From: Amoebophrya sp. A120
Taxonomy: Eukaryota > Protista > Dinoflagellata
DNA: 64,000 nt
Direction of reading: 5' to 3'
Assembly (NCBI GenBank): GCA_905178155.1
Contig: CAJINV010000004.1
Coordinates: 11,696,492-11,760,491 of the forward strand
In this document: one piece after another, positions 9,283-38,350 of the stretch
Layout of the letters: every line of letters starts with the position of its first letter
How positions within the stretch are numbered: the first letter of the stretch is position 1
Position numbers and translations under genes: made by a program
The notes under the pieces: model-generated
Seen by the model: the letters and a program-made list of their open reading frames with translations, nothing else
The model's database searches: none
Told to the model about the DNA's origin: nothing

Positions 9283-12200
9283 CTATCTGTCAAAATGCGT
9301 CAAATCACATGCACGCGCTTTCCAATTTTTGTTCGACCGGTAACCATCTAACTTGTCTTGCAACAGCTTCAACCGTGGCACTTCTGGACGCATGACCCTT
9401 CCCGACCCCTCGATATTCGTGTTGAAGAGCGCCTGTGCGATTTGCCAACTTGCGTCAGAACTGTGCGTTTGCCCATTCATGATGTTCTGCAGCTGCGCAA
9501 TCATAAACGCGGAGTGGAAGTAGGAGGGTTCTAATTCCAGAAACAGGTTTCCGCTGTTCTCCGCCCACTGGCATAGCGTTTGCAGCGTCAGATCGGTGAG
9601 TCCGTTGCTGCTCCGGAGACGGAGCAGTTTGATGTTCGGCAACGTGTGCATCAGGAGCTCGATGCTCTCGTCAACCAGGTGCTCGCAGCTGTTCAGGCGG
9701 ACTGGGAGTTTTGAGTGTTTTCGTGGTTTTTCATGGATCCATATTTCTTACCCTTCACGTCGTGAAACGTGCAAAAAGTGTTCGCCGTCACTCTTGGCAA
9801 GGACCTTTCAGCTACACTGCAAAAGAGTAGATTGAGACCGCATATCACACGTACAGGAGAAAAAAAGAAAAAAGCAAAAAACTACACTTTTGCTGTAAAA
9901 ATACGGATTTCCAAGCTTTGCCCGCAGAAATTTCCGATCGCCCGCAGCGCGTTAGTGTTGAAATAAATCCAGTCAACTTCCAAATGCTGCAGCTCTTGGC
10001 GGCCCCGCAGTTCGTCCGCCAAATTTGCGTAGGAATGACCTATATCAAATGTAAAAGTGTCTGGGTCTGGAAGAGTCATGCTGTTTTTGCATGACAAAGA
10101 AGGTCATCTGCCATGGAAGCTCTAGCATTACAGGTTTCGAGAAGCTTCCGCAATGCCGAATCGGCATGACAAATCCCCCACTTTGGTGACAGAAAGTGGG
10201 CAGCTTTTGCCACCCATGCATGAGAGATTTTTCTGTCTTCTGAAATGCGCATCACAAGCTTGTATTCTTCCAGACCCAGACATTTTTGCATTTGATAACC
10301 GAACACCATGCCCTTGTACATGTCGAGGTAGCACAGCTCCGCTTCGTATCAAATGTAAAAATGTCTGGGTCTGGAAGAATGCAACTTGTCATGCTAAATC
10401 TGAAGCATGCAAAAATCAAAATCAGTGTTGCGTGATTACCAAAAGTCGTCCAGTTTTGACCAAGTCGGGAGGGAGTTTCTCATGCAGGATAGGCATGAGA
10501 GAGATTGCGCAGAATCTGTCATGCTAGGTCCTGCATTCCAGGCTTCGTGGGTCATGGAAAAGCTGCATGACAAATTGCGCATTCTTCCAGACCCAGACAT
10601 TTTTACATTTGATACTTCGGGAAGAAATTTGAAAATCTTCAAGGTCTTCCCCAATTTCCGTAAAAGCAAGTTGAACAGCTGATCCTTGACGTGTTTCACG
10701 CGCATCAAATTTCCGCGGATGGTAAAACTGACAATGTTGGGAAGGAACTGCTGGTCGGCAAAATTCGTTGTCGCTTGTCGCTGGAACGTTTCTTCTGTTG
10801 TCCCGCTAATACCTCCGGCCAGACCCCCGCCTCCGGGACTTGGCACTGCCACGGGGTTGCGCAGGCACCAAATCAGGTTTTCCGTGAGAAAATCCAGCTC
10901 CACGTGGGTTAAATTGGGAAAGAAGGTGTTGACTTTCCGGAGAATGGGGCTCACGTACGGGAGCCGGAGCAGTTCGTCCCAGTACGCCGGGTTTTGCCCG
11001 AGTTCGCGGAGTTCTCTTCGTAGCCCTGTGTTGTGGAATTCCGGCGGGAGACAGAGAGAAAACTTCTTCAACGTCGTAAAGTACTTTGGCGGCTTTTTCC
11101 TTTTGCCTGACGTGCTCTTCATTTGGCTTGATGTGCTGTCTCGCCTCATCGGCACGCTAAACTCGTCTACGAAATACCGGTCGGCGTTGGCCATGGACAG
11201 ACCCTGCATCACAATCTCTTTGTTCGGAATAACGCGATCTGGAGGCTCCTGCTTGGCTTTCTGCTCAACTACTTCCAGGGCGTCCGCGTCATCCAAATTG
11301 TCGGCTGCAACTAGTACATCGTCTTTGTTCCTAACATCTTCAGCCGCAGCACCCTCTCGTCCCTGCCGCTGCTCGAGAGTTGATATTGGTATTGAAGTCG
11401 AACTGCTCGCAGGTATTTGCCTAAAGGTAGTTGCACCCTGCCCCTTTCCTCTGTTCTGGACTTCCATGCGCTTTTTGCGCCGCAACGAGCCGTCGCTCGC
11501 GTTTCCTGGCGACTGTTCTTCGTCACTGCTCGATTGGGGCGGCGGCTCCTTGAAAAGCCATTCGATTAGAGGCTCTTGCGGGATTTCCAAACTCGCAAAA
11601 TCCAGCTCGTCTAGCTCCACTGCGGGGCGGAATAGGAGGTGCAATTCCTGCAGGTTGAAGCCAGAAGTTCCTCCAACCAAATCCGAACCGAGAAAATTTG
11701 GATCATTTCCATGTGTCGGTCGTGCGCCACCAGGAAGTAGCTGCCCACCTTCGCCGCTAGAACCACCACCGCTGCTCATGAAGGAGTTCAGCAGCAACAG
11801 CGCGTGCAGATCTTTCAGTAATTTGGTCGAAAAGGGGACGTCGAGCGTCAAACACCGCAAGCTCGTCACATCCGCGACGGCCTCCAAAAATTGCGACAAC
11901 AAATCAATCCCCTGGGTCGTTCTGGTCTGCAGGTAAACCGTTTGGAGACGGAGGAACTGGATGTGAAAGGGCAGCGGCTCGACCAGTTTCTCGTTTCCAA
12001 CGAGGCAGCGGAAACGGAACTTCCGCAAATTCTGTCCGGTGTGGGACAGCAGCCGGTAAAAGCCGGACAGCTTGTGCTCGACTGGCGCGTGGGTGTGCGT
12101 GTAGGAAATGCCCTTTTCCTGCCACAACCCGGGACTGAAGCTGGCGAGCCAAAACGCCGTGCAGACGCGGGGCATGGATTTCGCGACCAGGGAGGGTGGG

Positions 12201-12853
12201 AGGAACGTGAAGAGGTACGCCAGGAGCTGCGTATCCATGCCGTTGATCAAAACATGCGTCTCCGACAGATTCGCGTCGGACCCCCGCGCGCGCTGCAGCA
12301 ACGCGTCCGGCTGGGTGCCGCCAAAGTCCGCGCAGGGAGGGAGGCAGCCGGACGGCGATTTGGTACTGGAATGCGTGGAGGAAAGGGTCTTGGTTGGGGC
12401 ACCAGGAGGGCCCCTTAGTGTGCCGCTGATGTTGTGCCGCTGCGTTGGTTGAAGGTGTTCCTCATTGCTGCTCCTGCCCCCGGCTGGTAGTACAGCTGCA
12501 GTGCTCCTTCTTTTCGGAGACTGCAAATTCATTTGCGTGTGGGTGTTACCATTTGGAAGAAGTAGTTCGTGTGCTGAGACAACAACATCCGCACCTCCTT
12601 GGTCCACCTGCAGCCGCAGCACGGACGGTGGGGGGCTATCCGGAAACATCTCGCCCTCCGCCTGCATTCCCGAGCGCTCCGTCAGCGGTGGCGAGATCTC
12701 GGGTGGCGTGTAGGCGTTCGAATTCGAAGTGCCATACGTGGTCGGCGGCGTCGCCGCCTGCTGCTCTAATCGCTGCTCCAGCAAGCTCAAGGGTGGGCGC
12801 CGCGGGACCCCGACTGTCGCGCTCATCCAGGACTGCAGTTGCACTTGGACCAT
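9283..12853 (-). CDS. F-box / leucine-rich-repeat protein (4 exons)
   Basis: F-box-like INGMDTQLLAYLFTFLPPSLVAKSMPRVCTAFW and LRR-like SLEILRLNSCEHLVDESI, LPNIKLLRLRSSNGLTDLTL. The frame is restored by removing TIR elements at 10347 (FLPE|AELCYLD) and 10043 (MVFG|HSYAN) plus GT-AG intron 9702-9904. Confidence 0.75.
10043..10297. mobile_element. TIR introner family 1 (255 bp), now with GT-AG boundaries
   Basis: TATCAAATGTAAAAGTGTCTGGGTCTGGAAG...CTTCCAGACCCAGACATTTTTGCATTTGATA. TSD on transcript strand TCGGT/TAGGT; intron 10040-10299 reads GT...AG. Confidence 0.9.
10347..10614. mobile_element. TIR introner family 1 (268 bp)
   Basis: ~35-45 bp TIRs; perfect 5-bp direct repeat CTTCG at 10342-10346 and 10615-10619. 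Confidence 0.95.
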
Positions 12854-13084
12854 CCTGTGCAAAAGTCTCGAATAGTAGATACTCACGCACAATTCATTTA
12901 CATTTTTATTTCGAGCTCGCTTTGGCTTCGACTCATACAAACCGTATACGCAGTAAACACTCGAAGGAGTACTTAGTTCAATATGTATTTTGCGAATTTT
13001 TATCTTATGCAATAGAAATCCAAATGAAATTTGCAAAGCGCATCTCGCCTTCACAAATACGTGCTTTTTCTTTTTACCGATACT

Positions 13085-13948
13085 TTATTTGCAAAGGATA
13101 TGGATCGGCGGCGCCACGAATTCCCGGACGACTTGCGTTTTCGGCATGGGGTCGCAGTCGAGGTGCAGCACTTGGTTGAGAAAAATCTCCAGCTCGCGGC
13201 GCCTCTGCTCCAGGTCGAACTGGAACAACTTCGACGGAAAATGGTTCAGCGTGTACTTGAATCGGAGCTGCTCGTAGAGCTCGTAAAACTGCGAAAACCG
13301 TCTGGACACCACCCACTTGTGCTGGCCCTCGATCTGCTGAAACTGCTCGCGGTAAAGCGAAACATCGGATGTAAAGGGCGTAACGCAAGTGGTTTTGCTG
13401 ACCGAACTAGAGGGCGACGCCGCGGGGCCTCCAGGTTCTCGTGAGGAAGATGCTCCTGTAGTGGCTCTATTTGATACCGTCCTCGAGGCTCCTGCGGCAT
13501 TCGTCGACAACCCCGGTGAAGATATAGCCGTGTTGTGCGCTCCTGAAACAGCAGCTGCAGGGCTCCTTCTGTGCTGCGTCTGGCCGTTGTAACTGTCGCT
13601 GCAGGGCACTGAGAGCGCGGCGAAGCAGCCGTTAACGCCCGGGAGAACGCTTGCGCCAGAAGGAGGAGCACTACGGTGTCCTTGCCCTACTCCTGCGGAC
13701 GAGGTTGAAAATGACCCACTACCAGAGGAAGCAGAACTACCTGCAGCTGCCCTGCCCCCGAACGTGGTAAAAACCCGTTGCTGCGAACCTCCATCGGGCA
13801 CCACCAGATGGATGTTGTAGTAGACCGCCCCGTCCTCTTCCATGGACTTTGTATAGCTGTAAATGGACGCCCGAATGGCGGACGCGATAGGACGCTCCGG
13901 CAGAACATTGTCCGCGTCTTTCTCGAAGGCGGAAAGAGTGCCGCCCAT
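13085..13948 (-). CDS. PX (phox homology) domain protein, possible N-myristoylation (MGGTLS)
   Basis: VYYNIHLV...KWVVSRRFSQFYELYEQLRFKYTLNHFPSKLFQFDLEQRRRELEIFLNQVL is a typical PX signature, interrupted by a low-complexity insert. Confidence 0.8.
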   Translation of the reverse strand: MGGTLSAFEKDADNVLPERPIASAIRASIYSYTKSMEEDGAVYYNIHLVVPDGGSQQRVFTTFGGRAAAGSSASSGSGSFSTSSAGVGQGHRSAPPSGASVLPGVNGCFAALSVPCSDSYNGQTQHRRSPAAAVSGAHNTAISSPGLSTNAAGASRTVSNRATTGASSSREPGGPAASPSSSVSKTTCVTPFTSDVSLYREQFQQIEGQHKWVVSRRFSQFYELYEQLRFKYTLNHFPSKLFQFDLEQRRRELEIFLNQVLHLDCDPMPKTQVVREFVAPPIHILCK

Positions 13949-15295: not shown

Positions 15296-18200
15296 TTAGC
15301 GCTTTTTCTTCGACCCGGCTTGCGTCATTTGCACGGCCCCCGGGCTGGCTGGCTTCGTGGGGAGCTTTCGTGGCGTCAAAGCCGTCGGCTTCGACCTGCG
15401 GAAGCACAGGCCGCAGCAGCCGCAGCACATCAAAAGCTTGAGGAAAAAGATCACGGTGGAGAAGGCGAGGGAGAGAAGTTTCCAGCTGACGCCGATCACC
15501 AGAGAGACGACGACTTTGCGGAAGAGGAAGCACAACACGACTCTGTAGAGCAGGACCTTCAGGAGGAGCTTGTAGACGAGAAACTTCAGGACAAACTGGT
15601 ACAACTGGGGTATTTTGGTTGGTGGAGTTCATCTGCTGCAGAAGTGTAAGAAAAGCTGCATTCTTGTACAAATGCATCAACACGCCGACGAGGAGGTCGT
15701 GCTAGACCATAACCATTGCTATGAACCGGTGCGCGCTCATCGGGGGGGGAACATAAACAAATGAAGTACAACAAAATGTCATCCAGTGAAAATTCTGCAA
15801 GTAGTACCACGAAGTAGCTCAAGAAAATTCCGCCGATGAGGAGGACGAGGAGGTCCCAGGCGCCGTTGGTAAATTTGACTTCTTCTCCGAAGACCTGCAG
15901 CGTTATATTGCAAGGAAAAATCCCCCCTCCCCATACTGAAAAGGTATATTTTTGGAAATTTGTGATGCTGATTTGTGGCAACAAATCGTGTCTGTCTTGC
16001 AAGAAGGCAACTCCGCAGGCTCCGCCGCATTGTGCAGGCGGGTTGTCATGCTGTTCGGCCTACAGCGCGGATGTTTTTCATGCTAAGTGCCTAAGCCAAA
16101 ACCTCGCTACTCACACTTGGTATGGGCCTTCAGTGTTCTCCAGCAAGACGCCTCGGATTTGTGTACGCAAATCCAGCATCACAATTTTCCTTTTCGATAT
16201 GGGGTGGGGGGTTTTTTCCTTTTGATACGTTAGTGGCTGGTAGATGAAAGTCTTCAAGTCTTCCACCGCGGTTTTGCTGCTCAGCAACTCAGTCGCCTGC
16301 GGGATGGCCTTCTCCACGGTGAAGGTGTACCTGCGGTAGTGAAGTTTGTTTTTGATGAACAATTTCATCCACCAAGCGGCCCTTTCAATGAGTGTATCGG
16401 AGCCGTCTGCTTGAACTTCATACAAGTGGATCGCGATTTGCCGACATACGTACACGAAAAAAAAAAATGGATTTTTTGTCGACGACAGAGCAGTACATGT
16501 CTCCCGTGGCGTTTTGCGCAGCGGCGAGCGCCGTGTTGACGTGTTTGTCGACGTTCAGACTCTGGTAGGTTTTCGAGGCCGTGAGCACCAAGGGGTCTAA
16601 GTGCTTTGCAGCGTGCACCCGGTACAGCACGTGACCCTGCGCTATCAAATGCAAAAATGTCTGGGTCTGGAAGATTGCGAGATTTGTCATGCTGATCTGG
16701 CATGGCCCTTAAATCTGTGTTGCGTGGCCGGAAACAGCCTCTCTCGCGTGTCATGCAAAAACGCAATTTCTCATGCGGAATACGCAGCACAGAAGCACGA
16801 AGCAACTTGTCATGCTTGGCGGCGCATTACAGTGCATTTGTTATTGACTGACTTGCATCACAAGTTTGAGTTTCCAGACCCAGACATTCACATTTTTCCA
16901 TTTCATATGCGCCAAGCCGGCCTCTATCTGCGGCTGCACGGAGTTTTCGTACAGATCTGTCGTTTATCAAATGTAAAAGTGTCTGGGTCTGGAAGAATGC
17001 AACTTGTGATGCTGAATTTGGATTCCAAAAAAATCTGTATTGCAGGAGCAGCAAAGGGAGTGTAATTCTTGCTAGGCGGAGAGGGCATTTGTCATGCGGA
17101 ACAGGCATCGCGAGGCCCTCAAAAAATCTGTGACGCTAGGGCATGCATCACAGACATCATGGCCCAGGCAGAACATGCATGACAAGTCTCAGAATCTTCC
17201 AGACCCAGACATTTTTACAGTTGATATCGTTTTTGCGTAGGCCAGCGACGCGCCGTCCTTCAGATTTGCGCCGACCGTCTGGGAGAGCTGGCACATGTTG
17301 GTTTTCAGGCCGGCGCCTTGCTTATCCATCACCGCGCTCAGGTTCTGAAAGTGCGTCTGCAGCACGTTCTTGTAGAAAACGCCTTAAGTAGTGTTGCATA
17401 ATTTTGAACCAGGATGTTGCACGGGAGTGTGCACAACGATCAAAGTGTCGTCGTGGTAAAGATAGTAGAGAGACCTATAGTACTGACAGCGACTTGGCTC
17501 AAAGCTGTTGTAAAAGCTGGGCGAAAGCTATAGGGGCCGACTTTTTTCGTGAATCTCCACGCTGTTGCAGCCAGGACTTGGCTCAAAGTTGGGCAAAAGT
17601 TGGCTCAAAGCTCTAGACCTAAGCACTTTTTTGCTTCTATTTTCTTCTGAAGCGCGACACTATTGCAACAAACTTGTGTGATATGAGCTCTAGACGTTCA
17701 GAGACGGCGAATTGCAAATCAGCATGCTATGATTGGGAAAAGTTGGCTCAAATATGGGTCAAAGCTCTAGAGGTTTTTTTACAAAACGGCCCGAAAAAAA
17801 CGCCGGAAGAGCTAGACGAATCAACTTCCCAGGCTGCCTATGAGGAAGAGGGGCGCCGCGGGCCCAATAGCTTCATCCCAGTTGAGCTCTTCTGCAGTTC
17901 AATTACGACTGCGAAACTCCCCAGGGTAGCTACTCCTCGCCGAAAAACAGAAACTCGCGCGCCCCCAGTGCTTATATATTTCAAGTCCAGACGCAGACGC
18001 GCCGCCGCTCCGGGCCAACGATCTGGACGCAAGAAAACGTCGCCCCGGTCCCGCAAGCGAGCCGGCGCCGCCCTGCCCGGCCGCCTTCTCTCTGGCTGGG
18101 GCCGGGGGCCCGGCTGCAACCGGAAACAGAAAAGACAACCTCCGGGGCGCACCGCCCCCAATGGTACGCGCATCACCCCGGACCGTTTCCACTAATTGGC

Positions 18201-20884
18201 CAAGCATCTCGGCCAGAAGGCGGCGGACAAAAGCCGCCGGCGCCTCTTTTCCCTTGTGCTTAGTGATAAAAACCTCAACGCATACCCTCCGGCCAGCCTG
18301 CCCACTTTTTACTCGGCTATGGCAATGGGCGGGAAAACTAAAAAACCCCGGATACCTGCTGCCCGCTGGCCACGCGCGACACGCAGGAGAGACTTCGCCG
18401 CGCCTTTCCCAGCTGCGTGGCGGGGCAAGCCGAAAGGCGCCGACGCGTCCGCGCCTTGGGTAGCCAGCCAGCCAGAGGCAATGGCGGCCCGGGCGCCCGC
18501 GCCCATGCTACCGCCCAAGCGAATGCGCCAAAGCGGCGCGCAACCGGAAGGGCTGCGGCTCTTTTTTGGTTCAGAGCTCTTCTCATCCGACCGCGGCCAC
18601 CTGGACACGCAGCCAAAGAGCTAGCCCCGCCCTTTCGTCCGCCTCCTATTAGACAGAACCTGTTGCGGCGCTGGGCCGCTGCGGAGTTTCGTGCGAGTTG
18701 CTGCGGGCTCCTTCAGCTGCCCAGCCGACAGAGGGAGAACCCAAGCCCCTGCGTCTTCTGCCTTATCCGACTGGCCGCCGGCCGAAAGAAAACAGCCAAA
18801 ATCGGCAAGGAAGCAGGCTAGAACGAGACGGCGACCAGGCAGTACGTAGGCAGACCTGCACCGAGCGGGGGCCGCAGTGCTTCTCGACGGGCCCTTGCGA
18901 TATACTAGCAAACGCGCCCCGACTTTTGGCCCGAGCATGGATGGCCGTAGGTTTTCTTTCTTCCTTGTAGTGCTGTCGCTCTCTTATTTCTTGAAGCTTG
19001 CCTAGCTAATATCATCTTCGTTTTCATGCATTGCTGACGCCTAGCTATTTACACCGCCTTGAGCCCTATTGTTCTATTTGTTTGCGTAAATTCCCGCGCC
19101 GTTGTGCCTCCACGGCGGCGCGAGTGAGGTATACTGATACTCATGACCATGATTTAGATTTTCAACCAGTGTGAAAAAATCACATCCAATAAAAACCAAT
19201 CAAACTAAAGTCCTCACCCGACAACTTCCCGACTAGTGCGAAGTCCACGTATCCACCCCATGGTGACGCGCCTCCTTCCGCCATTTTTTTGGACTTCTTT
19301 TCTGCCGCTTCGGACTTTTTCTCTGCGTCGGCGACGGCTTTTTTGGCCATTTTCACTTCTTCCTTCGCGGCCTTTATTTGGGTGGCCAGCTCGTCGTTGG
19401 CTCGCTGCGTCGCGTCGGCGTCGTCGTCCGCCGTTTTCTTCAGATCGGCATACTTCTTCTTCAGCTCCTCATACTTCTCTGCCAGCTGTGCTTGTTCGGG
19501 TGATGGTGAAGCTGTTGGGGAAGATGTTTAAGGGGGATGTGAACACGAGAATCACATAAAAACAGGTAAGTCTGGTGGTCTTTATTTGTGCATCTTTTGC
19601 CTATGCGTATGCTATGTACCCAACTGAATAGTTTGCGAATAAAAATTGAAATGTGATACTCTATGCGTTTTCCAAAAGAGACCCTTTTCCAAAACTTTCA
19701 TACCTGCTTCTCCCGCCTTCTTAGCTTTCTTCTCCGCATCTTTGACCTTTTTGTCTGCCTTCTGCTAGTATGCATTGCAACTATGTCTGAGTCTGGCAAG
19801 TCGTCATTCATGCCATTATGTGGATGGCCGGCATACGATACTGACACTCTCATCCACAGAAGTTCTTTATTTTGTACCGATGTGTTGCTGTTGTTTATGC
19901 TGACCATCCCTTGCAAGTTGCCTTTTTGCACAACAAGCAAGGAGTCGTGGTCTCGTTGGTACGCACCATGTATGGTTGTAGACGCTAGCTGCGCTGCGAA
20001 GCTCCAGACCAAGACATTTTTGCTATATGCATAGCTGTATCTCCTCCACGATTCCATTTTGCTGGGCCGATATCCACGAAGAAAATTGCTTCACTGTGAA
20101 TGTAAAGTGCGGAGGATAAAAGGCAGATTCGTCTCTTTTCTTTTGAATTGCAAGGAAATGCATCTCCTTCTCTTAGCGGGACAGAAGGTGCCCACGATGA
20201 CAGATTTCCTTTCTTTGCCATGCGTTTTGCAGCCGTTCTACGGATCGTGCAAGGTCATTACAGTGAAATAATTTCTTCGTACGATATCCAAAACCTTCTC
20301 TATTTTTGCCTCGGCGTCAGCTGTATTGTCAAATTTTCAAGGGAGTTCTGGTTTTCCTCTTCCTCTCTAAAATAGCGCAGTTTTTTTTCTACAGTCACGC
20401 CTCTGCCGCTTTTCTGTTTTTTCATCGACATCGCTTACACTTTCATACTAAGTCAAAGAAATAAACGCACACGAATCTATTAAGCCATTAATCATACCTT
20501 TCTCTGCCTCCAATTTTCCCTCCAACTCCTTGATTTGCGTTTCAGCCTCTGTAAGCTTTTGTTGCGCCAGTTGCTGCAGCTGTCCCAGGTTAAATTCTGC
20601 GGAGCCCTTAGCCTCCTCACACGTTGCTGCTTCCTGTTTTAGTTGTGTATTTTTTGTCGTCATGCACATTTTCCAAACGGAGGGTCTTTTTTTACGTTTC
20701 TCATGCCGCATGATGCGCACGGCAAGCCAGTTGTCAGGCAAAAAGTCCTTACCTCAGTTTTCTTCGCCAGCTGGTCTTTCAAATCTGCGACTTCGCTGGC
20801 AACCGCATTCTTACCTCCCGCGGCCGCGTGTGCAACCGACGCGTAGTACGCGGTGAAGCAAGCGAACGTACGCTTGAGGACCAT
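15296..20884 (-). CDS. Multi-exon protein: signal-peptide-like N-terminus, Lys/Glu/Ala coiled coil, C-terminal hydrophobic segments and Cys cluster
   Basis: Phase-compatible joins: MVLKRTF...KKTE|EAATCEE; AGEA|ASPSPEQAQLAEKYEEL; GKLS|GVFYKNV (GT-AG intron 17383-19217); YAKT|TDLYEN and GLAQ|GHVLY across TIR elements; PYQ|VFGEE; LSYFV|LYQFVLK...MCCGCCGLC. The junction near 16450-16495 and the 19770-20490 interval are unresolved. Confidence 0.6.
16643..16907. mobile_element. TIR introner family 1 (265 bp)
   Basis: Family-1 TIRs (right one slightly degenerate); direct repeat TGCGC on both sides. Confidence 0.9.
16965..17226. mobile_element. TIR introner family 1 (262 bp)
   Basis: Direct repeat TCGTT; nearly identical internally to the copy at 34398-34659. 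Confidence 0.95.
17491..17771. repeat. Cluster of short TTGGCTCAAA(G) / CAAAGCTCTAGA repeats inside a 1.8-kb intron
   Basis: Motif seen at ~17494, 17578, 17600 and 17743. Confidence 0.6.
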
Positions 20885-22830
20885 GCTGCTTGTATGTGCT
20901 TCTACAATGGGGGTAGAACAAGAAGTCTTTCAAGATGAAAAGTCCGCCCAAGATGACAGCAGCAAACCGGAGTTGCTCGCTGGGTCTTGACCTTATTGTG
21001 CGGACGTTGTCGTGGATCTACTTGGTCTGATGGATGCTGCTTTTCATAGCTGTGAGAGAGCGCAATACAGCGTTGAGATACTAACGAAGGCTACAAAATC
21101 GAACTACGAAAGTTTCTTTTGAAAAGAAAATTGAGTACATACGTGCGATAGTTCTTTTTTACTAGGAGATTTCTTGTTGGGAAAGTCGGAAAGAGAAAGA
21201 TGTTCTCGGTCTTCGGGTCGCTGAAGAGGATGATCCGGCTTTCGGGTCGCTTAGGTCATCACAATAGCAATCGGCAAAGATTCGGATTCGGATTCTGACG
21301 AGTTTTTCAAATACCTCGTGGAATTTTCGAAAATGCTCGACATGATACGGATCTTTGTCCGAAATCTTTTTTCTTGGTGCCGTGTGAAGAGTCAAGCTCA
21401 ACAACAAAATAAAGTAGTGATCGGAAGACATGGTTATGGATCATCCGGCGAGCAGCTGCATACTCGTTCGTTTGTTTTATCCGTTTCAACAAATGGGAAT
21501 CATGCAACCAGAACACGACACCGACAGGAGACGCTGCATCTGATTCAGCGCGCAGTTTTAGCATTTGCTCTTCTACTGGGGAGAGCAGAGCCGTCGAGAA
21601 AGATGCCTTGAACTTGATCATGTTGCTACAATTTCATTCTTGACGTTCTTTGTTTTTACATAAAAAAATACTCTTGCTGACTTTCACGAACGCAAGAACT
21701 ATGCTTGACATTCGCAACTATAAAATCAGTAGTGGTGTAGAAGATGCTTTCGCTGGCGACAGGTTGATGTGATGATGATGAATGGTCTAAATTATAATTA
21801 TACATTAAATCTGTCTGTCAAACTTCCCAAATTTTCATTTTCAGGCACTAACACTAAGCGTTTCTTCTTACAGTCATACGTCTGCCAAATTACGAAGTGC
21901 CACTGACACTGGTGATAGACGCACGCGAGACGCAATGTAATTCATTGGCATAGAGAAAGAGCAGAAGTAGTTACTTACTTAATTCGCTCAGAGGAATGCT
22001 GATTGAGTTCAGTGCACAGATTTTCAAACTTCGCCGCGCCCATGCGCCTCCGTGTCGTGTCCTTCGTTTTTGGCGGTGCCGGCCGCATGCAGCGAATCCT
22101 GCGCAAAGCCCGTCTCTCCGTTGTCGCGGACGACAAAGCTCGAAGACAGCCCGTCCGAACCCCGAACAGCCGACCATGGAGGGCCCCCATAGCAGCAAGA
22201 GAACGGAAGCCACGAAGAGGACGTAGACGGAGCAATGGATTCATCATCGGATTCCACCAATTCCTGAAAAAGAAATCAGCCTTTTTCTTTCTTCATCGTT
22301 TTTCATCGTGTTTGCGTTGACGTTGCTCTCATCAAATATTTTCGTTTTGTAAATACAACGGCACTTCTTCTAGTACGATGAATTGCATCTGTGAGGGTTC
22401 TGCGTTATTAGTTGGCACGATGCCGATGCAATTGGGTTGGTTCCACATTCAAACAGAAACCAGAGGAACGCCAATACGTGTTCCTTCCTCCAGTCGGGCA
22501 CGTCCTCCTCGTCTAAGGCTTTGGAGTCAAGACGTGATAAAGAGCCTCGTGATTCAGATTCTCGTTGCCGCCTCTCTTGTGCTTCTTCTCTTTCGCCGAA
22601 TTTTTTCTGTGCTTCGCGCCTCATGCTTCGCGGGAATGCGGAATCTTACCCCTCGGTTCCCTGGCAATACGATGCCATTGCCATTGGATGTATCAATCAC
22701 CTTGAAAGAATATCAATAGGTAGTTTTTTTTTCAGTCCCGATCAGCTGTTGCATGGCTTATGGTTATGCATTCAAACCTTACTACATAAAACATACTGGT
22801 ACTAACTCTACTAACTGCCCAGCCATATAT

Positions 22831-29187: not shown

Positions 29188-29960
29188 CCTTTGTAGTTTC
29201 GTCGGGGGAGATTTGTTTAGATATAGTAACTTCAACTTCTAGTAAGTATAATGCCTTCCCTTCGGGGAGCGGGCTCGTTTTGTGTCGTGTCTACAATTGG
29301 TATTTGTCGACCGATCTTCATTCATTTTTCTGTCGCTGGCGCTCTTAGGCGGCAAAAGAATACTCAACAGTTTCTTTCTTGATGACGCTCTCGACGCCAC
29401 ACAAGACCCCCAAGTATTTGCTCATGCTTCGTCTTTTTTCGCTCTGCTCTCAGGTTCGCAGCACCATGCACATGTCCACGAGGCCGCTGAGGCGCTGCAA
29501 ACAATCAAGATGAACGGTAACCAAGAGGACGTGGAGTGACTTCTCAAACAGATGCGTGGGGAGAGAGAGAGCGACGATTGCGAGATCGACTATGGTTCTC
29601 CATAAACAGAATGTTTGGCTTGCATGCGACTGCGAGTCAACAAGTACTGCGACGACAAGAAGAATCATCTTCGATAGGCACCTCTGTACAACTCTCATCA
29701 GCCTGTTTTACTTGAGAGTGAAGACAAAGTAGCATGAGAATTTGTAACTTCTGCGAACTCCTCGAGAGATAGCAGGAGTCGTGCGTTAGCGTTCATTCAA
29801 AGGAGATTTGAGTTTCGCTAACTGGCCTGTATAAGTAGATACTGCAGATGCATTTGGTGTTGTGAGCCGTGTGTTCATTAGACGGTGACGGAGGTGTGCA
29901 AAATTTCAACAAAATTATGCTGCGATTGCGAATCGAATTTCATTCCGCTTCACCCCGCCA

Positions 29961-32703
29961 TCAGAGCCATGAGGAGTTCGCGACCCGTTTCGACTTTCCG
30001 GCGTTATCAACATCCGCCTGCTGCTCGGCCATCCTTTTCAGACCCGCGCGACAGAGCGCTTTCACATCCATACTGGGATCAACCCGCAGCTGGCTCACCA
30101 AGGCTTTTTTCCCTTCCTCACACGGTACGCGGGTCAGCGCCTCCGCCATCAGCAGCCTCGTGTACTCCGCTTTCTCTTTCCGCATCGCCTGCCCGAGTCG
30201 CGAAGCGAGGGCGTTCGCTTCGCTCAGCGTCGTCGTTGAGGTGGCAGTGGCACGAGTTGTTCCGCTTGCCGCTGCTGCCACTGCTGGTGGGCAAGCACTG
30301 GAGCTGCCGCCGACTTCGCTCCCGGCGCCAGCGCCTGTAGACGTCGCATGATGAGTCATCTGGTCCTCCTTGTCTCCCTCCTGCAGCAATTGTGTCGTCA
30401 GCATGGCGTTGCGCAGACGTCGCTCCTCCTCCAAACTCTTGCAGGCGTGCAGGTCGTGAATCAGTTGGGATATCGCCAGCGTTCGGATCCACTCGTCGTG
30501 ATCCTCCAGTAGCTCCCGCACTCGCGCTTTCGCCTCCGAGTCGAAGTTCGAGATGTCCCCGAGGCCGCAGCAGGCGAAGGCCCGTAAGTGGGGAAATTGC
30601 TCGTTGTAACTCCATATGAAATGCAAAAATGTCTGGGTGTCGGTGTGGAAAAGTGTAAACTTGTCATGCAGATTTTCCATGACCCGTGGGCATGGCCATG
30701 AGGTCTGGTTCTGGAATGCGGGACTTAGCATGACAGACTCTCCGAGGTCTTTGCCATGCCTATGCTGCATGAGAAACTCCCTTCCAACTTGGTCAAAAGT
30801 GGACCGCTTTTTCGCTCTCATGCAAGACATATTTTTGCATGCTTCAGATTTACCATGACAAGTTGCCGCCTTCCAGACCGAGACACTTTTGCATTTGATA
30901 CTCCATTCTTGCAGTTTCCACGACAGCTTCTTCCGGAAGTGGCTCGACCCCTGGTGCCACAGTTGCTCGACCGACTTCAGGACCGGAGGCGGTCGTTTTG
31001 CCACTGCGGTGGAAGAACCAGAGCTTCTTCGGTTTCTTGCTGGCGCAGGGGGTGAAGCGGATGACGCAACAAGGTCAAGTTGGTTCCCCGTAGAAGCAGG
31101 CGGGTTCGGTGCGCTTACCGAAGTTGCTTCTGGAGCTGCTAGGATGGTTCTCGCACCCCCTTGTTGATGTCCCGCGGTCGCGCTTGGTGTTGTTGTTCCC
31201 CATGTCCTCGCGCCAACATTTGTCCTCTCGCCCGGGAGGCCCTCGGGATGAAGCACGTCCAGGCTCCGGTAGAACTGGTTCTCCTGCTCCTCATCTTCTG
31301 ATTGGTCTTGCTCACCCCCATGCCATAGTGAAGACGCGTCGACAAACAGAGCCTTGGCGAGATCTTTTGCGTAGCGAGCGTTTGGATTTTGTTCACAATA
31401 AGTAGTACTTCCTGATGACGATGTTGCTCTACTTTGCCCTCCCCCACCTCGCGGAGCCAAAGTCGTCGCATCCTTGAACAAATCGGTGTCCAGATTTCTC
31501 TCCGACCGGTTGGCTTGGCTGCAGATGCTTACCAGGCGGAGGTGCCGCCACTGCTGGAACAGCAGTTCCTCGTATTCGCGGCGAATATCATCTGCAAAAG
31601 TATCGCACTCGTAGTAATTGCAATCACGCATTACAAATCTTTTGCTTAAGGTAAATCCGCGTCACAAATTTGATTTCTCATTCTGAGGAAATTTGTAATG
31701 CATTTATCCGAGTACGATACTTTTGCAATGCATAGCGAAATGGCCGGAACAGCTCAGCATCTCCCTTGCACACCAGTTCCCACTGCTTCAGCTCCTTCCC
31801 GAAACCTCTTTCTAGCAAGATGTCCAGCGCCGCACTGCGGATGGCTTGGTGGAGGTCAGAGTGAGAAAGTTGAGGGTTCTGCTGTTTTTCAACATTGATT
31901 GCGTCTTCGTCATCATTCGGTGGTCGCTCAACATGCCCTTCCTGACGTTGAGCAGCACTGCTGACTGCGTCGTTTATTTGTTCATCCTCTACTTGCACTT
32001 GGTCGTGCAAAAAGGGCACTTTCCCTCTGTCAGCAGCGAGACCAGGCGGTGCATCGCCCGGTGTTCTTGGAAGTTCTTTTTCCAGTACAGTGTCAGGAGT
32101 GCCGCTAGGACCGAGAAAACCCTCTCGGCGTGGCCGAGCAATTGGTGTAGCAATGCCCATGTCAGCGTCGTGCGGAAGATGATCGACGTTGTGTATCTGT
32201 ATGTGCTGTCCTCCAGCGCTTGTTTGGGGTTCATCTTCCGTAACTACGCTGCAATACGGAGGCGTGGCCTGCTGGTCGGAGGTTCCAATTCTAGCTGGCG
32301 ATCTACTTCTCTTTTTCCGACTACGGCCCGAATAAACCGGCGTGAACAAGGGGCGCCAACACGAGGGTGTTGATCTATGTTGCATCGACGACGAGCAGCC
32401 AGGCGTTTCATGCTGTCCTCTACTTCGTAGTTTGACGGGTTCCGTGGAAACAGAGACTGCGCTCCTTGTCGAGGCGGAGCAGTCGTGTTGGTATGTTTGA
32501 TCTTGCGGATGTTCATCCCCTTCTGGTGAAGCGGTTTCTGAGCTCGAGGTAGTTGTAGACCAATCTGACCCAGCGTGCAGCTTCCGCGTCAGCCCGGTAG
32601 ACGCAAAGCGCAGGCGAGCACCTGACACATCGAAGTAGAAAAAGGAAGATATTAGGGCACATACGGAAACGAGACCACGACGTGTGGGATAATTGTTGGC
32701 CAT
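29961..32703 (-). CDS. Hypothetical protein with signal-peptide-like N-terminus (3 exons)
   Basis: ORFs 31678..32958 and 29961..31631 join across the TIR element at 31586 (LFRPFR|REYEEL); element at 30615 removed gives KLQEWS|YNEQF. Leader MANNYPTRRGLVSVCALISSFFYFDVSGA. Confidence 0.6.
30615..30900. mobile_element. TIR introner family 1 (286 bp), in frame and stop-free
   Basis: Direct repeat CTCCA; ORF 29961..31631 reads straight through it. Confidence 0.9.
31586..31734. mobile_element. TIR introner family 2 (149 bp)
   Basis: TATCATCTGCAAAAGTATCGCACTCG...CGAGTACGATACTTTTGCAATGCATA; direct repeat GCGAA. Confidence 0.9.
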
Positions 32704-33073
32704 TTTCTTCGATATTTGCATTTGCTTTGTCAAGTTCAGCCGCGGCTTTGGTTGCAGCCTGGTACCACTTTTGGATACGCACAGTTCACGCACTGAAACT
32801 TGAACTTCCCACCTTCTTTGCCAAAGGTCGAAGATCGAGAAAAACCACAACCACGAAGCAGGATCTGGGGAAAAATTAAACCTTAGACACACAGAAGAGA
32901 AGAAAACATTGATCATTGGACTGTCATTCAGATTCAGGGGAACACCGACAATTATCAAAATTGATTTTCTTCACAAGATGGAACTCCACGTAGAAGTAGA
33001 TACAACTGAGGAAGTCGTTTGTTGAGCTGACTTATTGCTTTGGTTGTTTATCTCAAGGCTTGGCATTGAAAAA

Positions 33074-36000
33074 TTATTCTTTGTGCTGTGTAAGTAGAGC
33101 TGTTCCACCACTCGAACGCTGTGCTAGTGACGGCGCGAGAAACGAAGTTGCCCCGGCACCAAATGCTACGCCTGGTGTAGTTTGCGGCACCGGCGCACCA
33201 AAGCCAAGTGGCGTAGTAGAAGCGAATTGTGGAAAGGACGACGACGCAGAACTCGCTGTCCGCAGTGGCTGATGGAACTGCGAAATAGCGGGGACGTCGC
33301 CGGACGAACAAGAAGCGAAACCCGGCCTAGCACGACCGCTGGGAATTATCATGGTCGTCCTTGAACTTGAAGAAGATGAGGCACCACTCCCTCCTCCAAA
33401 ATGGCCCCACGACGTTGGCGGCGCAAACTGTGACGTCGTGGAGGGCTTTCCCGCGGTCGTGCCGGCTGTTTTCACAGAAGTTCCTGTCGTAATCCTGGTC
33501 GTACTAGTACTTCCACCAAAAGCTGCTGCAGAAGAACCACTTGATGAAGTTGCTGATGCTCCTGTCTTCCTTGCTTTTTGCGCCTGTAGTTTCTCCTTCT
33601 TCTCCTCCGCTAGAACCTCATCGTCCCATTTGAAAAATTCGCAGCTGGTGTACGTATATCAAATGCCAATATTTCTGGGGCTGGATGATCACGATTCCGA
33701 GATTTGTCATGCAGTTTTTCCAAGCTCCGCCAAGTCTGTAATGCCGGGCCTAGCATCACAGGTTCTGCAGCCCCTTGGTGATGGTGATGCCTATTCTGCA
33801 TGAGAAATGACTCCCCGGTATGGCTAGAAATGGGCACCTTTTGCAAGTCATGGAACACAGATTTTCGTATGATCCGCAACACGCATCACAAGTTCGTATC
33901 CTTCCAGACCCAGACATTTTTGCAGTTGATAACGTAGCACTGCTCGTCGTGGAGGTCTGCAGCTTCGTCTTAGACGGGTCGAAGTTGTTAGTTCCCGGTT
34001 CCTTTTTGCCTTTGCCCTTCCCCTATCAAGTGTAAAAGTGTCTGGGTCTGGAAGAATGCAACTTGTCATGCTAAATCTGAACAAGGCAAAAATCTGTGTT
34101 GCATGATTACCAAAAGTCGTCCAGTTTTGACCAAGTCGGGAGGGAGTTTCTCATGCAGGATAGGCATGAGAGAGACAGAGATCGCGCAGAATCTGTCATG
34201 CTAGGTCCTGCATTCCAGACCTCATGGGTCATGGAAAAGCTGCATGACAAGTCGCGCATTCTTCCAGACCCAGACATTTTTACTGTTGATATCCCCCCGC
34301 CCGCCCGACCGCTCCCAGTCCTCGGATTGGTGCAGCTCCAGAAGTACCGCCCGAGATTCTGGTTCGCTTTGAAAACCGGCTTCAGCATCGCCCGCTTTAT
34401 CAAATGTAAAAATGTCTGGGTCTGGAAGAATGCAACTTGTGGTGCTGAATTTGGATTCCAAAAAAATCTGTATTGCATGAGCAGCAAAGGGAATGTAATT
34501 TTTGGTGCGCGGAGAGGGCATTTGTCATGCGGAATAGGCATCGCGAAGCCCTCAAAAAATCTGTGATGCTAGGGCGTGCATCACAGACATTGCGGCCCAT
34601 GCAAAACATGCATGACAAGTCTCAGAATCTTCCAGACCCAGACATTTTTACATTTGATACGCTTCCCGCAGTGGCAATTCGGCGCGCGGTTGCTCACGTC
34701 GTAATTGCGCTCGCGGAACGTGAAGGAAAGCCGGCCCTCCCCGCTGATCGGGTGCTCGTGCAGTTTGTTGTCGACCGGAACTTCGTGGCGCCAGAACTCC
34801 TGGAAACCCTCCCACATGACGAGCAGAGAATTGTGGGGAAGGCGGATCGCATAGGACGTCACGCGGCCCTTCTGTGTGCTTGAGGGTGTCTCTTTGTTCG
34901 CTGTTGGTGTCGCTATGTTGCTCTTTGATGTGTTTTTCGGCAGCTTTCGCTGATCCTTGTTCTTATCGTCGACAGGTGTGGTCTCAATCTCAACGTAATT
35001 CACAGGCTTCATTTTGAATTGCCGACTTGCGCCCAGCGTGAAGGCCGCCACCAGAGCCCAGGGCCCGATGCTCTGCACGGGGTCGGAGTGCGCGCCCAGG
35101 AAATCGGACTTCGCCGTGTAGTAGTTGCAAACGCAAAAATCCGGTTTCCACATCGGCGCACCGGGACCGGGAATGTACTGTCCAAAGTGTTTGATGGTGG
35201 AGAGATTCGCACCGGCAGCCGCACGCTGGAGACGGAGGAGGCGGAGACAGGTCGTGCTGGTGGACGATGAAGCTTGGTGCTCTTCTCGTCTATTGCCATT
35301 GGTCGTTGGTTCATTTGGATTTTTCCCCGGCTTCTCGACAGAAGTATTAATCGTTTTTGGTACAACTACTGCTGTCCTCTCCCCAAGACTCTTCCAAGCC
35401 TCGTCTCGCGGTCTTTTCTCGTTCCCGACAAGAAATTTCTCACACCCGATCGCCACGGCGCCCGAGCGCAACTGTTGCACGCGATTCGTGATCACGTTCC
35501 GCACGTGCGCCACACGGTCGCCAAAATCGGTGTTTTTCCAATTTTTCGGTAGGTGGTCGAAGGAAAATCCGGTTTGCAGCCGGTGAGACACGATCTCCTT
35601 GTCGTACAGCCACCGCTTGGATTGGCGCCAGGTCACTTCCAGGAAGCGTGTAAGGAGGTCGTCGGCAAAGTCCTTCGCGAAAATGTTCTCCATCAGGTTC
35701 TATCAAATGCAAATATGTCTGGGTCTGGAAGAATGCAAGTTTGTCATGCTGCTTTTCCATGACCCATGAGGTCTGGAATGCCGGAGCTAGCATGACAGAT
35801 TCTGCGAGAACTTTCTAATGCCTATCCTGCATGAGAAACTCCCTCCAAACTTGGTCGAAAGTGGACTGCTTTTGGCACTCATGCAACACAGATTTCTGCA
35901 TGATTCAGATTTAGCATGACAAGTTGCATTCTTCCAGACCCAGACATTTTTACAGTTGATAGGTTCACCGGGCAGTGCTTCTCCAGTTCGGCCACGGTGA

Positions 36001-38350
36001 TTTTCTCCGTGATGGTTTTGTTCGAGTCGAAAAGCTATCCTGTGCAAAAGTATCGTATTCGTATAAATGCAAGGCTTGCAATCTCTCACTCTCTTAAGGC
36101 AAATCAGCATTACACATTTTATTTGTCATGCTTAACAGACTGCGCAGCTAAAGCCCGGGGGGGTGCGGGGTCCGAGGGGTGCACTAGGCACTGCCCGGAA
36201 CACCCGAACATGCCCCGCGACCGGCACAGGACCAGCAACACAACTAGTAATCGTCGATCACAGTTTGTCGATCACGACGTAGCTGAGAAGCCGTCCATAC
36301 GCCTGGCGCCCCAAGCCCAACCCAACCCCCGAGGAAACGCCTCGACCACAGGAGGACCAAAACAAGTGAGCTTACGGCACAATGAACTGGGAGCGCCTGT
36401 CTATGGACCGGATGAGGAAGGCCCCGGAAGACCCATTTTATTTGTCATGCTGAGAAAATTTGTAATGCATTTATACGAGTACGATACTTTTGCAGTTCAT
36501 AAAAGCACAACCGTCCGAAAAATGTCGGGCTCGTCTGCGACTGTTCTTCTTGGGGGCTCGGAGCAGGACGGAATTGCTTTTCTTGCGCTGGGACGAGCTT
36601 CGATGTGCGGTGTGAACTGGTTTAATATTGCAGGTCGTGTACTAGTAGTACTCGCAGACTTATTGTTCTCATCAGTTGCAGCTGCGCCTGTGCCTGTACG
36701 ACACGCGCTCGTGCTTACAGCAGGCTCGTTGTTTTCTTCCTTCCGGAAGAAGCCTTCTGACGCCTTCTTCGTCTGAATAGGCGCAGCAGCAGCTCCGAGC
36801 ACAGTTGCTACATCCCCTTGATGGTTTTCTCCAGTTCGGCCACGGCAGTGCTTCTCCAGTTCGGCCACGGTGATTTTCTCCGTGATGGTTTTGTTAGAAT
36901 CGATATCAAATGCAAAAATGTCTGGGTCTGGAAGAATGCAACTTGTGATGCTGCGTTTCGATGACTAAAAAATTTGTGTTGCATGAGCAGCAAACAGAGT
37001 CTAATTTTTGCTACGCGGAGGGGGCATTTGTCATGCGGAATGGGCATCAAGAATCCCTCAAAAAACCTGTGATGCTAGGGCATGCATTACAGGCATCATT
37101 GGTCATGAGAAATATGCATGACAAATCTTGCATTCTTCCAGACCCAGACATTTTTACAATCCATAATCGAAAAGCACAACTGTCCGAAAAATGTCGGGCT
37201 CGTCTGCGACTGTTCTTCTTGGGGGCTCGGAGGACGGAACTGCTTTCGCGCTGGGGCGAGTTTCGATGTGTTGCGGTGTAAATTGGTTTGTTGCAGCAGG
37301 TCGTGTACTAGCACTAGCAGATTTATTGTTTTCATCAGTTGCAGCTGCGCCTGTACGACATTCGCTCGTGCCTACAGCAGGTCGTTGTTTCACTGCAGGC
37401 CACTCGTTGTTTGCTTCCTTCCGGATGAAGCCTTCTGGCGCTTTCTTCGTCTGAACAGGGGCAGCAGCAGCTCCGAGCGCAGTTGCTACATCCCCCTGAA
37501 GCACTTTCGTCTTCACAGCGTCGTGCTTCTTTTCATTTTTCCAGGTTTCCGCGCGCGCCTGCAGTAGCCCGAGAACAGTTTTTTCTGGTTTTCTTGGGGC
37601 GACATTGGTGGTCCGTCCATTGGGATTCGTGGCCCTTGCCGCTGCCTGCATGAGCCTCTCCGCGGTTGCCAACGCATTTTTGCTGCTTGTTGGATTGGAT
37701 GAAGTTGCGGCTGCATCAGCATTGGTGGTCGCTGCAAATTCAAATTGATTATGGGCTTCCTCTGGGAGAAGGAGAACTCTACTACTTCGAGCCGGAAGAC
37801 CCGGGGTCTTGGAAGTGCGGTCTTCTTGCAAAATTGCAACTGGCTGTGGATGCGCATGCGCGTCATGATCGAGGGAATAACAATCCAGCGGCGCGATATC
37901 GCTCTTCCGAAGGAGCGAAGGGGGCGGAGAGGACGATGACGAGAGCTCGATAAGACTGATATCGTGTTCGTTTTTCTTCCTATTTTTGTTTTTGCTGCCA
38001 ACATCCTCCTGCGACCACTGAGCTCCTGCTTCAGAAGATTGCGTTCGAAACTGCTGGCGTCCCCTGTTTTCAGGCGGTTCCGGAGCCGCGGGTGGACGAG
38101 CTGGCGGGTCATAATTGGGCTGTGAGGACGAGGAGACAAAGATAACGCTCTCGTCGAGGCTACTGTCGAGGTGCACAACTTCTACAGCGGGCTTTTCTGC
38201 TTTTTCATGTTCGTTCGCGGCGTCCGCGACCGGGTCTCCGTCCTCCTTAATGTTACTCTGTGCAGGTGTACAAGCTCGGTCTGCTTCTGAGTCAGAAAAT
38301 TCCTGAGTCGAGATGCGTCGCCGCTTCAGGTCCGGTGTTGAGGAAGGCAT
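33074..38350 (-). CDS. AlkB-family 2OG-Fe(II) dioxygenase with C-terminal GRF zinc finger (7 exons)
   Basis: CVCNYY...LGAHSD (HxD), AAFTLGASRQF, IRLPHNSLLVM...WRHEVP, RLSFTFR. After removing 6 TIR elements the GRF finger reads PNCHCGKR|AMLKPVFKANQNLGRYFWSC...T|YTSCEFFKWDD. Confidence 0.85.
33657..33931. mobile_element. TIR introner family 1 (275 bp)
   Basis: Direct repeat ACGTA. Confidence 0.9.
34024..34291. mobile_element. TIR introner family 1 (268 bp)
   Basis: Direct repeat TCCCC; nearly identical internally to the copy at 10347-10614. Confidence 0.95.
34398..34659. mobile_element. TIR introner family 1 (262 bp)
   Basis: Direct repeat CGCTT; splits CHCGKR|AMLK. Confidence 0.95.
35701..35961. 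mobile_element. TIR introner family 1 (261 bp), opposite orientation to 34024
   Basis: Direct repeat GGTTC; join KHCPVN|LMENIF. Confidence 0.95.
36036..36501. mobile_element. TIR introner family 2 carrying a nested insertion (466 bp)
   Basis: Family-2 TIRs; direct repeat AAAGC; join RTVVL|FDSNK. Confidence 0.9.
36133..36433. mobile_element. ~301-bp GC-rich insertion flanked by 18-bp direct repeats (retroposon-like)
   Basis: CATTTTATTTGTCATGCT at 36115-36132 and 36434-36451; the corresponding position is single-copy in family-2 copies at 26103 and 31586. Confidence 0.75.
36904..37165. mobile_element. TIR introner family 1 (262 bp)
   Basis: Direct repeat ATCGA; join VVLFD|SNKTI. Confidence 0.95.

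Follow-up and report, generated by a model that had tools for sequence, protein, structure and literature searches.

The last 64 kb of contig 4 of the Amoebophrya sp. A120 assembly (CAJINV010000004.1; 115,520,608 bases in the whole assembly), hereafter called the window, contains minus-strand genes whose coding sequence is interrupted by short elements with terminal inverted repeats (TIRs) and a flanking 5-bp direct repeat. Between positions 10043 and 37165 there are 21 such elements of 138 to 466 bp, together with one decayed copy at 12851-13100, and two further decayed copies lie outside this interval, at 49804-50023 and 50133-50277 (Table 1). A first-pass annotation, made from the letters of the sequence, had listed 20 elements in the interval and a degenerate one at 49804; the observation and the 49804 copy both stand, but the count becomes 21, and the decayed copies at 12851 and 50133 come in addition.

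The window elements are the introner elements that Farhat et al. (2021, BMC Biol 19:1; PMC7789003) described in A120, and both the phenomenon and its TAT motif were already published for this very genome, as the annotation had said more generally of Amoebophrya. In that study, the A120 assembly measured 115.5 Mb, more than 60% of introns were non-canonical, and the introner elements numbered 29,850 copies with a mean length of about 240 nt, amounting to 17% of the genome. Their inverted repeats start with TAT, followed by about 7 variable nucleotides and at least three A residues, the borders carry direct repeats of 3 to 5 nt, the exon ends are drawn together by a hairpin, and the non-canonical splice sites were supported by RNA sequencing (RNA-seq). 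The genome, the TAT motif, the direct repeat, and the RNA-backed non-canonical junctions are all shared with the window elements, and nothing essential is different. The published inverted repeats span 8 to 20 nt, whereas those in the window reach 30 to 45 nt, and whereas the earlier work called the intron border “unknown” and argued against transposase mobility in A120, here the direct repeat is proven to be a target-site duplication (TSD) and one cut register is inferred. New here are the proof from empty sites, the contrast between DNA and RNA at the locus, and the testable fixed cut register.

All 21 elements start with TAT and end with ATA, and their TIRs are 19 to 48 nt long. In a motif scan, 18 of them showed the A-run, about 7 nt in, on one or both arms, the deviants being those at 15906, 27068, and 33657. 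BLAST of the window with the cleanest copy (10347-10614) as the query placed 15 copies of about 260 bp in family 1; three more belong to family 2 (TATCCTGTGCAAAAG...), and those at 15906, 26729, and 27068 belong to other families. The window contains 26 occurrences of a 21-mer derived from the TIR, whereas none is expected from 100 dinucleotide-preserving shuffles. No TAT...ATA element was found in the roughly 7 kb from 17400 to 24650, which has minus-strand coding-like segments of its own (for example, 19183-19527 and 22834-23382), so the elements are clustered in some genes and unevenly spread.

Target-site duplication and transposon nature

The origin of the 5-bp repeat is revealed by a gene at 38428-33077 in which about 134 codons are tandemly duplicated in frame (35962-37400), within the N-terminal part of its 1,177-codon reading frame, which also bears a 2OG-Fe(II) oxygenase domain. 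One duplicate is interrupted by a family-2 element at AAAGC and the other by a family-1 element at the adjacent ATCGA, giving reciprocal empty sites (35962-36035/36502 and 36845-36903/37166) in which each 5-mer is single when uninterrupted: the empty site of the 36036 element is the paralogous exon copy at 37166, and that of the 36904 element is the copy at 36026-36035. The 5-bp repeat is therefore a true TSD. It is perfect at 18 of the 21 elements (17 of 20 in the annotation) and imperfect at 10043, 27425, and 28664, in agreement with the three imperfect repeats that the annotation's count implies. Of 20 further copies taken from elsewhere in the genome, 18 have a perfect TSD, one has a single mismatch, and one has a damaged end.

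More than 3,155 candidate places in the genome match the elements, and the best 40 scored are 93 to 96% identical. Every element except that at 30615 has stops in all three frames. The TIRs, the TSD with its empty sites, the thousands of near-identical copies, and the lack of an open reading frame (ORF) together support the view, put forward in the annotation, that these are non-autonomous TIR DNA transposons, resembling MITEs (transposable elements of the miniature inverted-repeat type). The genome was searched for a transposase with the rve domain alone among transposase families, the 5-bp TSD having been taken as a hint of an integrase-type enzyme, and none was found for the TAT...ATA families. 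The rve matches examined closely (loci L012 and L025) are Copia long terminal repeat (LTR) retrotransposons, which likewise make 5-bp duplications, and 14 further rve loci, examined for this feature only, have no enclosing inverted repeats. Three candidates for an autonomous partner were rejected: a 7-kb multicopy element whose LTRs are direct and 368 bp long and whose Copia gag-pol measures 1,980 amino acids, an 8.35-kb unit with family-2 ends that is a Copia nested in a 145-bp family-2 element, and a 6.8-kb pairing in L017 that consists of two separate small elements. A preference for CG-containing TSDs was also considered and dropped (13/21 in the window, 5/19 elsewhere).

The nested unit (L012:247-8598; C1:15330547-15338898) has 225-bp LTRs and its own TSD, CTGAG, inside a host element with the TSD GACGA, and its ORF encodes integrase, SH3, and RVT_2 domains, so that the whole resembles a TIR-flanked element with retrotransposon genes. 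Going by description, it may be related to the “hybrid”, TIR-flanked Copia/Gypsy-like A120 introner family treated by Gozashti et al. (2025; PMC12130899).

Removal of element plus five nucleotides from RNA

Four public runs were compared over positions 25750 to 31749. One of these, X1, behaves as DNA, its depth over unique sequence being uniform at about 41. Its contig 26215-27112 keeps the 26729-26904 element between both exons at a single-copy depth of 40.7, other X1 contigs run across the edges of the element at 30615, and no empty-site joint is among the DNA joints listed. A second run, X3, has zero depth over 29350-29549, which lies between the exon models used, and its depth varies by gene (83 versus 11.7), showing that it is RNA; it holds 0.49 of the sampled words, by estimate about the share of the compared exon pieces.

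A 2,662-nt X3 contig without mismatches makes the joins at the 26729 and 27068 elements (Table 1) and then runs through 27273-27419, 41 nt, 28034-28337, 56 nt, and 28916-29284, the 41- and 56-nt stretches being the two micro-exons minus one repeat copy. In a second X3 contig, the join at the 30615 element skips 291 nt, that is, 286 + 5; this element plus 5 nt keeps the frame and has no stops, but is removed all the same. Overall, the RNA contigs show the loss of element plus 5 nt at seven elements, with one TSD copy kept in the joins, which is the outcome the annotation had anticipated in proposing that exact removal renders the insertions harmless. Pre-mRNA thus loses exactly the element and 5 nt. 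As the elements are missing from the RNA contigs but present at single-copy depth in the organism's DNA contigs, these data support removal at the RNA level, the first of the two levels that the annotation had offered. The spliced contig has a depth of 83, against 12 to 19 in element-internal bins of the locus, although these bins pool other copies. Contigs and proteins show one exact junction per site; contigs hide rare variants, so minor isoforms are possible. An RNA run from 2026 with the same species label (X10) contains about 70 reads in which a family-1 element end (window 26034-26067) is followed by at least 30 nt of unrelated flank, an element end kept in RNA at some other locus or strain; neither X10 nor X11 covers this locus.

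Annotated proteins cross five elements beyond the seven joined in RNA contigs, including ones outside 10043-37165. P0001, an annotated A120 protein that is 100% identical to an exon of the window over its best local alignment, skips the elements at 10043, 10347, and 12851. Neither its orthologue in A25, at 40% identity, nor a protein of an MMETSP Amoebophrya (P0002/P0003) shows a gap across 10043 and 10347, and the 17-residue micro-exon between the two sites is conserved in them at 82 to 88% identity; the comparison with sister strains that the annotation had suggested therefore finds contiguous orthologues at both sites. P0154, an annotated A120 protein that is 88% identical over its best local alignment to the query exon, crosses 49804 and 50133. 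Foreign 2OG-Fe(II) oxygenases found with phmmer are 53 to 57% identical over the matched stretches; P0005 to P0009 are contiguous across 34398, and P0005 aligns on both sides of 35701. The 34398 element lies at the C-terminal edge of the oxygenase homology, before a zinc-finger-like segment (GRF-type by eye).

Exon chains, walked locally codon by codon, are open only if element plus 5 nt is removed: one of 1,177 codons spans six elements, one of about 440 codons also spans six, and one of 854 codons spans two; the chain from 32970 to 29964 is open across the 31586 element. Direct RNA or an annotated protein supports frame restoration at 9 of the 21 elements, and homologue contiguity and/or an open exon chain does so at 7 more. 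The annotation had held that all of the elements lie in coding frames, none of them intergenic, and that deletion of element plus 5 nt restores the frame every time. Both statements hold for at least 16 of the 21; the other five, at 15906, 16643, 16965, 25809, and 26103, lack a supporting model. No consistent ORF model was obtained around 15906-17226 on either strand for the first three. Across 25809 and 26103 the frame is open, with two in-frame stops just upstream of the main ORF, and a protein search with exon 24656-25636 gave no match within the length limits. Asking whether the correct offset gives the longest ORF was too noisy to be of use (11/19 genomic copies, p 0.024; 11/21 in the window, p 0.056).

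Between the 33657 and 34024 elements lies an 87-nt piece (33932-34018) that is open in frame and has no counterpart in the homologues. It sits in the middle of the zinc-finger-like stretch (..GRYFWSC.. / ..CEFFKWDDE..) and may be a skipped pseudo-exon or a lineage-specific insert of 29 residues.

Splice signals and the cut register

A 5-nt repeat allows six equivalent registers per element, and these were tested on the transcribed (minus) strand. A canonical GT..AG register exists at 1 of the 21 elements, that at 10043, where it arises through the TSD mismatch. The other 20 have none, in line with the annotation's statement for most copies, and the options at 10347 include GT..AA and TA..AG, as it had also noted. 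Elsewhere in the genome, 1 of 19 TSDs (CCAGG) could give a canonical register. About 4% of 5-mers allow GT-AG by chance, so nothing points to selection for canonical sites. All four bases occur as the first, last, and second-last intron nucleotides. The family-1 copies, all of them in minus-strand genes, lie seven in one orientation and eight in the other, and both orientations are removed.

Where the two TSD copies differ, the transcript or protein shows which copy's letters stay. Six such elements fit a single cut register (Table 1), with the 5' cut 1 nt before UAU and the 3' cut 4 nt after AUA. The 5' cut then falls between TSD nucleotides 4 and 5 (register 4), and the intron starts with N-U-A-U-(C/G), U being invariant at +2 and A and U at +3 and +4; 7 of the 21 copies start with GU. 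The ends of the 49804 intron are CU..AC, and in 13 of the 21 copies a purine follows the 3' cut. Together the two offsets equal the 5-bp transposase stagger, which would make the excision scarless.

A GT..AG intron at 9703-9905 has a 5' end like an element terminus (G/TATTTTTACAGCAAAAG, the slash marking the cut) and a 3' end without the repeat. From its letters, it looks like an old element that has turned into a canonical intron.

Table 1. Elements of the window, with their target-site duplications (two copies are given where they differ), support for removal, and register evidence. Slashes in RNA joins separate the last and first joined positions; mismatch positions are counted in the RNA sense.
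Positions	Type	Orientation	Length (bp)	TSD	Support and remarks	Register evidence
10043-10297	Family 1	-	255	ACCTA and ACCGA (1 mismatch)	Reverse to 10347 copy	Differ at position 2; upstream kept; protein ..VFGHS..
10347-10614	Family 1	+	268	CTTCG	37-bp perfect TIR	
12851-13100	Decayed, family 2-like		250	ATCCA and GTCCA (RNA sense)	In-frame stop 13085-13087	Differ at position 1; upstream kept; P0001
15906-16227	Other family, TAT...ATA		322	CGTTA		
16643-16907	Family 1	+		TGCGC	Right TIR decayed	
16965-17226	Family 1	+	262	TCGTT		
25809-26065	Family 1	-	257	TCTGC		
26103-26240	Family 2		138	CGCTC		
26729-26904	Third family		176	CTCCC	RNA join 26723/26905	
27068-27272	Fourth family		205	TCACG	RNA join 27062/27273	
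27425-27720	Family 1, old	-	296	AGTAC and AGGGC (2 mismatches)		Differ at positions 2-3; upstream kept; RNA contig to 27419 plus 41-nt micro-exon
27767-28033	Family 1	-	267	ATCGT	RNA contig resumes at 28034	
28343-28602	Family 1	+	260	CGTCG	RNA contig stops at 28337	
28664-28915	Family 1	-	252	TGGTT and TGGCT	RNA contig resumes at 28916	Differ at position 2; upstream kept; RNA contig, 0 mismatches from 28916
30615-30900	Family 1	-	286	CTCCA	RNA join 30608/30900	
31586-31734	Family 2		149	GCGAA	RNA contig piece ends exactly at 31585	
33657-33931	Family 1	-	275	ACGTA	Exon chain open	
34024-34291	Family 1	+	268	TCCCC	Exon chain open	
34398-34659	Family 1	+	262	CGCTT	Exon chain open	
35701-35961	Family 1	-	261	GGTTC	Exon chain open	
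36036-36501	Family 2 with GC-rich insert		466	AAAGC	Exon chain open	
36904-37165	Family 1	+	262	ATCGA	Exon chain open	
49804-50023	Decayed		220	GCAAC and CAACG (RNA sense; flanking 5-mers shifted)		4 nt upstream plus 5th downstream; P0154 ..SSQAAR..; register 4 only
50133-50277	Decayed, family 2-like		145	ATCCG and ATCAG (RNA sense)		Differ at position 4; upstream kept; P0154 ..KIRTR..

Candidate removal mechanisms and related systems

The fixed distances, the free end nucleotides, the independence of orientation, and the exact removal of decayed copies suggest that the cuts are measured from structure. The reading that we tentatively favor, while stopping just short of calling it probable, is a helix-measured, spliceosome-independent cut-and-ligate removal like SOS splicing or the removal of nonconventional introns in Euglena. 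Elements would insert with a 5-bp TSD and be tolerated inside coding exons; the cuts would be measured from the RNA helix of the paired TIRs, with the terminal dinucleotides not read; a spliceosome-independent endonuclease would cleave; and an RNA ligase such as RtcB would rejoin the exons, making the process a precise relative of the animal and Euglena systems. The wider proposition, that some 30,000 insertions are removed by such a distance-measuring, spliceosome-independent machine, with transposon and host RNA-repair geometry co-adapted, we regard as possible and put forward with more reserve. In the 10347 copy with its flanks, the predicted stem exceeds 37 bp from U1, at -120.2 kcal/mol against -69.7 +/- 4.8 for shuffles (z -10.5), and every copy has the outer three pairs, followed by positions 4 to 7, which are often unpaired, and then by a long helix. 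The genome has one RtcB gene (C5:6115035-6117073) and two Sen-type endonuclease genes. The RtcB gene matches its Pfam model in five pieces and is therefore itself interrupted by four intervening sequences.

Several observations weigh against this reading. Register 4 is told apart from register 5 by a single case, that at 49804. The relic intron at 9703-9905 starts in register 4 (ATCC/GUAU) and fits a continuum with spliceosomal introns, the N-U-A-U-(C/G) start resembles the spliceosomal G-U-A-U-G-U, and a U-run is present in the 3' arm. Copies that continue to be excised often lack pairing at stem positions 4 to 7, and stem mismatches have no wobble bias in the RNA sense (18 G.U versus 22 A.C), so a search for selection on the stem at the RNA level gave no signal. 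TIR-guided removal, as the annotation proposed, may hold given a strongly predicted stem, but it gains no support from the pattern of mismatches or from pairing at positions 4 to 7; the annotation's interpretation as a whole is partly supported. SOS splicing is imprecise, whereas excision in A120 is exact. A weaker point is that AKAP17A (PF25015, its RNA-binding domain) and CAAP1 (PF15335) were unmatched in the genome at E <= 1 in a six-frame search, which is insensitive because it proceeds exon by exon on fast-evolving genes split by introners, and in which PF25015 had no positive control match.

A U2-type spliceosome freed from GU-AG is the alternative that we take most seriously, although we consider it somewhat doubtful. 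The hairpin would join the sites, and the element ends would supply U-A-U at +2 to +4 and a U-run 10 to 15 nt before the 3' site. Register 4 provides just these invariant nucleotides, with GU starts in a third of the copies (7/21); the relic at 9703-9905 is GU..AG in the same register, and the 10043 element becomes GT-AG through one TSD change. The genome has 10 copies of a U6 with the canonical ACAGAGA box, nearly all spliceosomal proteins have been found and about 40% of A120 introns are GT-AG (PMC7789003), and a tunicate spliceosome has adapted to 95% non-GT/AG introns (PMC13326754). Such a spliceosome would, however, have to work with three unconstrained terminal positions (first, last, and second-last) and with a 3' site that lacks AG in 20 of 21 copies, and since both orientations work, any branch point must lie in the symmetric TIR. 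The exact, fixed cut distances look measured rather than read. U1 was not found in the genome in our search, in which U6 served as the control, nor was it found by Farhat et al. U12-type splicing, suggested by the likeness of RTATCC to a U12 5' site, was rejected because the first nucleotide is free and U12 small nuclear RNA (snRNA) was not found in the same search. The window gave no match to an Rfam ribozyme or self-splicing intron.

Two further explanations carry far less weight. Programmed elimination of the elements from DNA in expressing cells, as with the internal eliminated sequences (IESs) of ciliates, would let transcripts come from cleaned templates; the loss of element plus one TSD copy is the precise transposase-type outcome, and the DNA and RNA runs came from different samples. 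We consider it very improbable, given that the DNA contigs hold the element between its exons at flank depth (40.7) with no empty-site joint listed, that the rve search yielded no transposase for these families, and that exact removal extends to decayed copies whose ends are mutated and whose TSDs are mismatched, which would be hard for a transposase. Still less credible, to the point of being scarcely tenable, is template switching by reverse transcriptase across a repeat-flanked hairpin, with the host genes actually broken. A hairpin, short flanking direct repeats, and no GT-AG are the classic signature of that artifact, but the spliced contig is far deeper than the element-internal bins (83 versus 12 to 19), and exact removal persists where the repeat matches at 3 of 5 positions (27425) or is shifted (49804). 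Moreover, ORFs as long as 1,177 codons are still open and conserved downstream of as many as six elements, which requires removal in vivo.

Among known systems, SOS splicing in Caenorhabditis elegans and human cells (Zhao et al. 2025, Nature; PMC12779559) is triggered by pairing of inverted terminal repeats, is independent of the spliceosome, requires RTCB, and is imprecise. As in A120, TIR transposons leave the RNA and stay in the DNA, by way of non-GU-AG sites near the repeat ends. SOS splicing uses many sites, leaves indels, and is often out of frame, whereas A120 shows one exact junction; it depends on AKAP17A, CAAP1, and RTCB, of which A120 has RtcB, the other two being unmatched in the insensitive search; and SOS-spliced exonic insertions are rare and purged, whereas A120 carries tens of thousands of fixed copies.

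The nonconventional introns of euglenids (PMC3935182) have variable non-canonical borders, short direct repeats, paired ends, and a suspected MITE origin, and the Euglena splicing code places a helix between fixed asymmetric spacers, N3 ... N5-6 (PMC12501133). The Euglena spacers measure 3 and 5 to 6 nt; in A120 the distances come to 1 and 4 nt when counted from the outermost pair, or to 3 and 6 nt when the third pair is taken, and in Euglena terms the A120 spacers would read N5-U-A and U-A-N1-4. The signature 5'-N3CDG ... CH'GN5-6/R, with the slash at the cut, does not describe the A120 ends, UAU(C/G)... and ...AUA: Euglena needs motifs of the CAG/CTG type, with a purine following the 3' cut, whereas the fixed letters of A120 are UAU/AUA and no purine is needed. 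The A120 stems are also far longer than the euglenid ones, and their transposon nature is explicit in families, TSDs, and empty sites.

Canonical introners (Huff 2016; Gozashti 2022, 2025; PMC9860276, PMC12130899), known from Micromonas, Aureococcus, Symbiodiniaceae/Polarella, and numerous other lineages, with A120 listed as introner-rich, are likewise non-autonomous TIR/TSD transposons that generate introns genome-wide, but they supply or co-opt GT/GC-AG and are spliceosomal, whereas 20 of the 21 copies here have no such register. In the tunicates Fritillaria and Oikopleura, where the great majority of introns are non-GT-AG and exactly removed, the U2 spliceosome is modified (divergent U2AF, changed N6-methyladenosine in snRNA) (PMC13326754); unlike in A120, specific terminal dinucleotides are still preferred and there is no TIR helix. 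Ciliate IESs, too, are transposon-derived, keep one copy of a short flanking direct repeat, and restore the frame, but a domesticated transposase removes them from DNA, whereas A120 DNA keeps its elements (contig 26215-27112) and A120 RNA lacks them.

The origin of introns and the survival of massive transposon insertion into exons are broad questions for which Amoebophrya represents the extreme: the majority of its introns are non-canonical, and many are recent transposons. The 2025 work on SOS splicing and the Euglena code now let the question of the excision machine be framed concretely. A fixed register predicts the sequence of the by-product (circle or lariat), the ends of cleavage intermediates, and the outcome of reporter experiments. 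If the favored mechanism is true, removal in A120 would be the precise, genome-scale counterpart of animal SOS splicing, possibly by the same kind of machine as in Euglena.

Two minor observations complete the account. The RNase III domain PF00636 has no match in the genome at E <= 0.01 in a search whose bacterial controls match but which is insensitive on split genes; if Dicer/Drosha-type enzymes are truly absent, long TIR hairpins in pre-mRNA would escape dicing. At the very end of contig 4, positions 63638-63949 form a GC-rich tandem repeat with a period of 72, 4.2 copies, and 83% matches.

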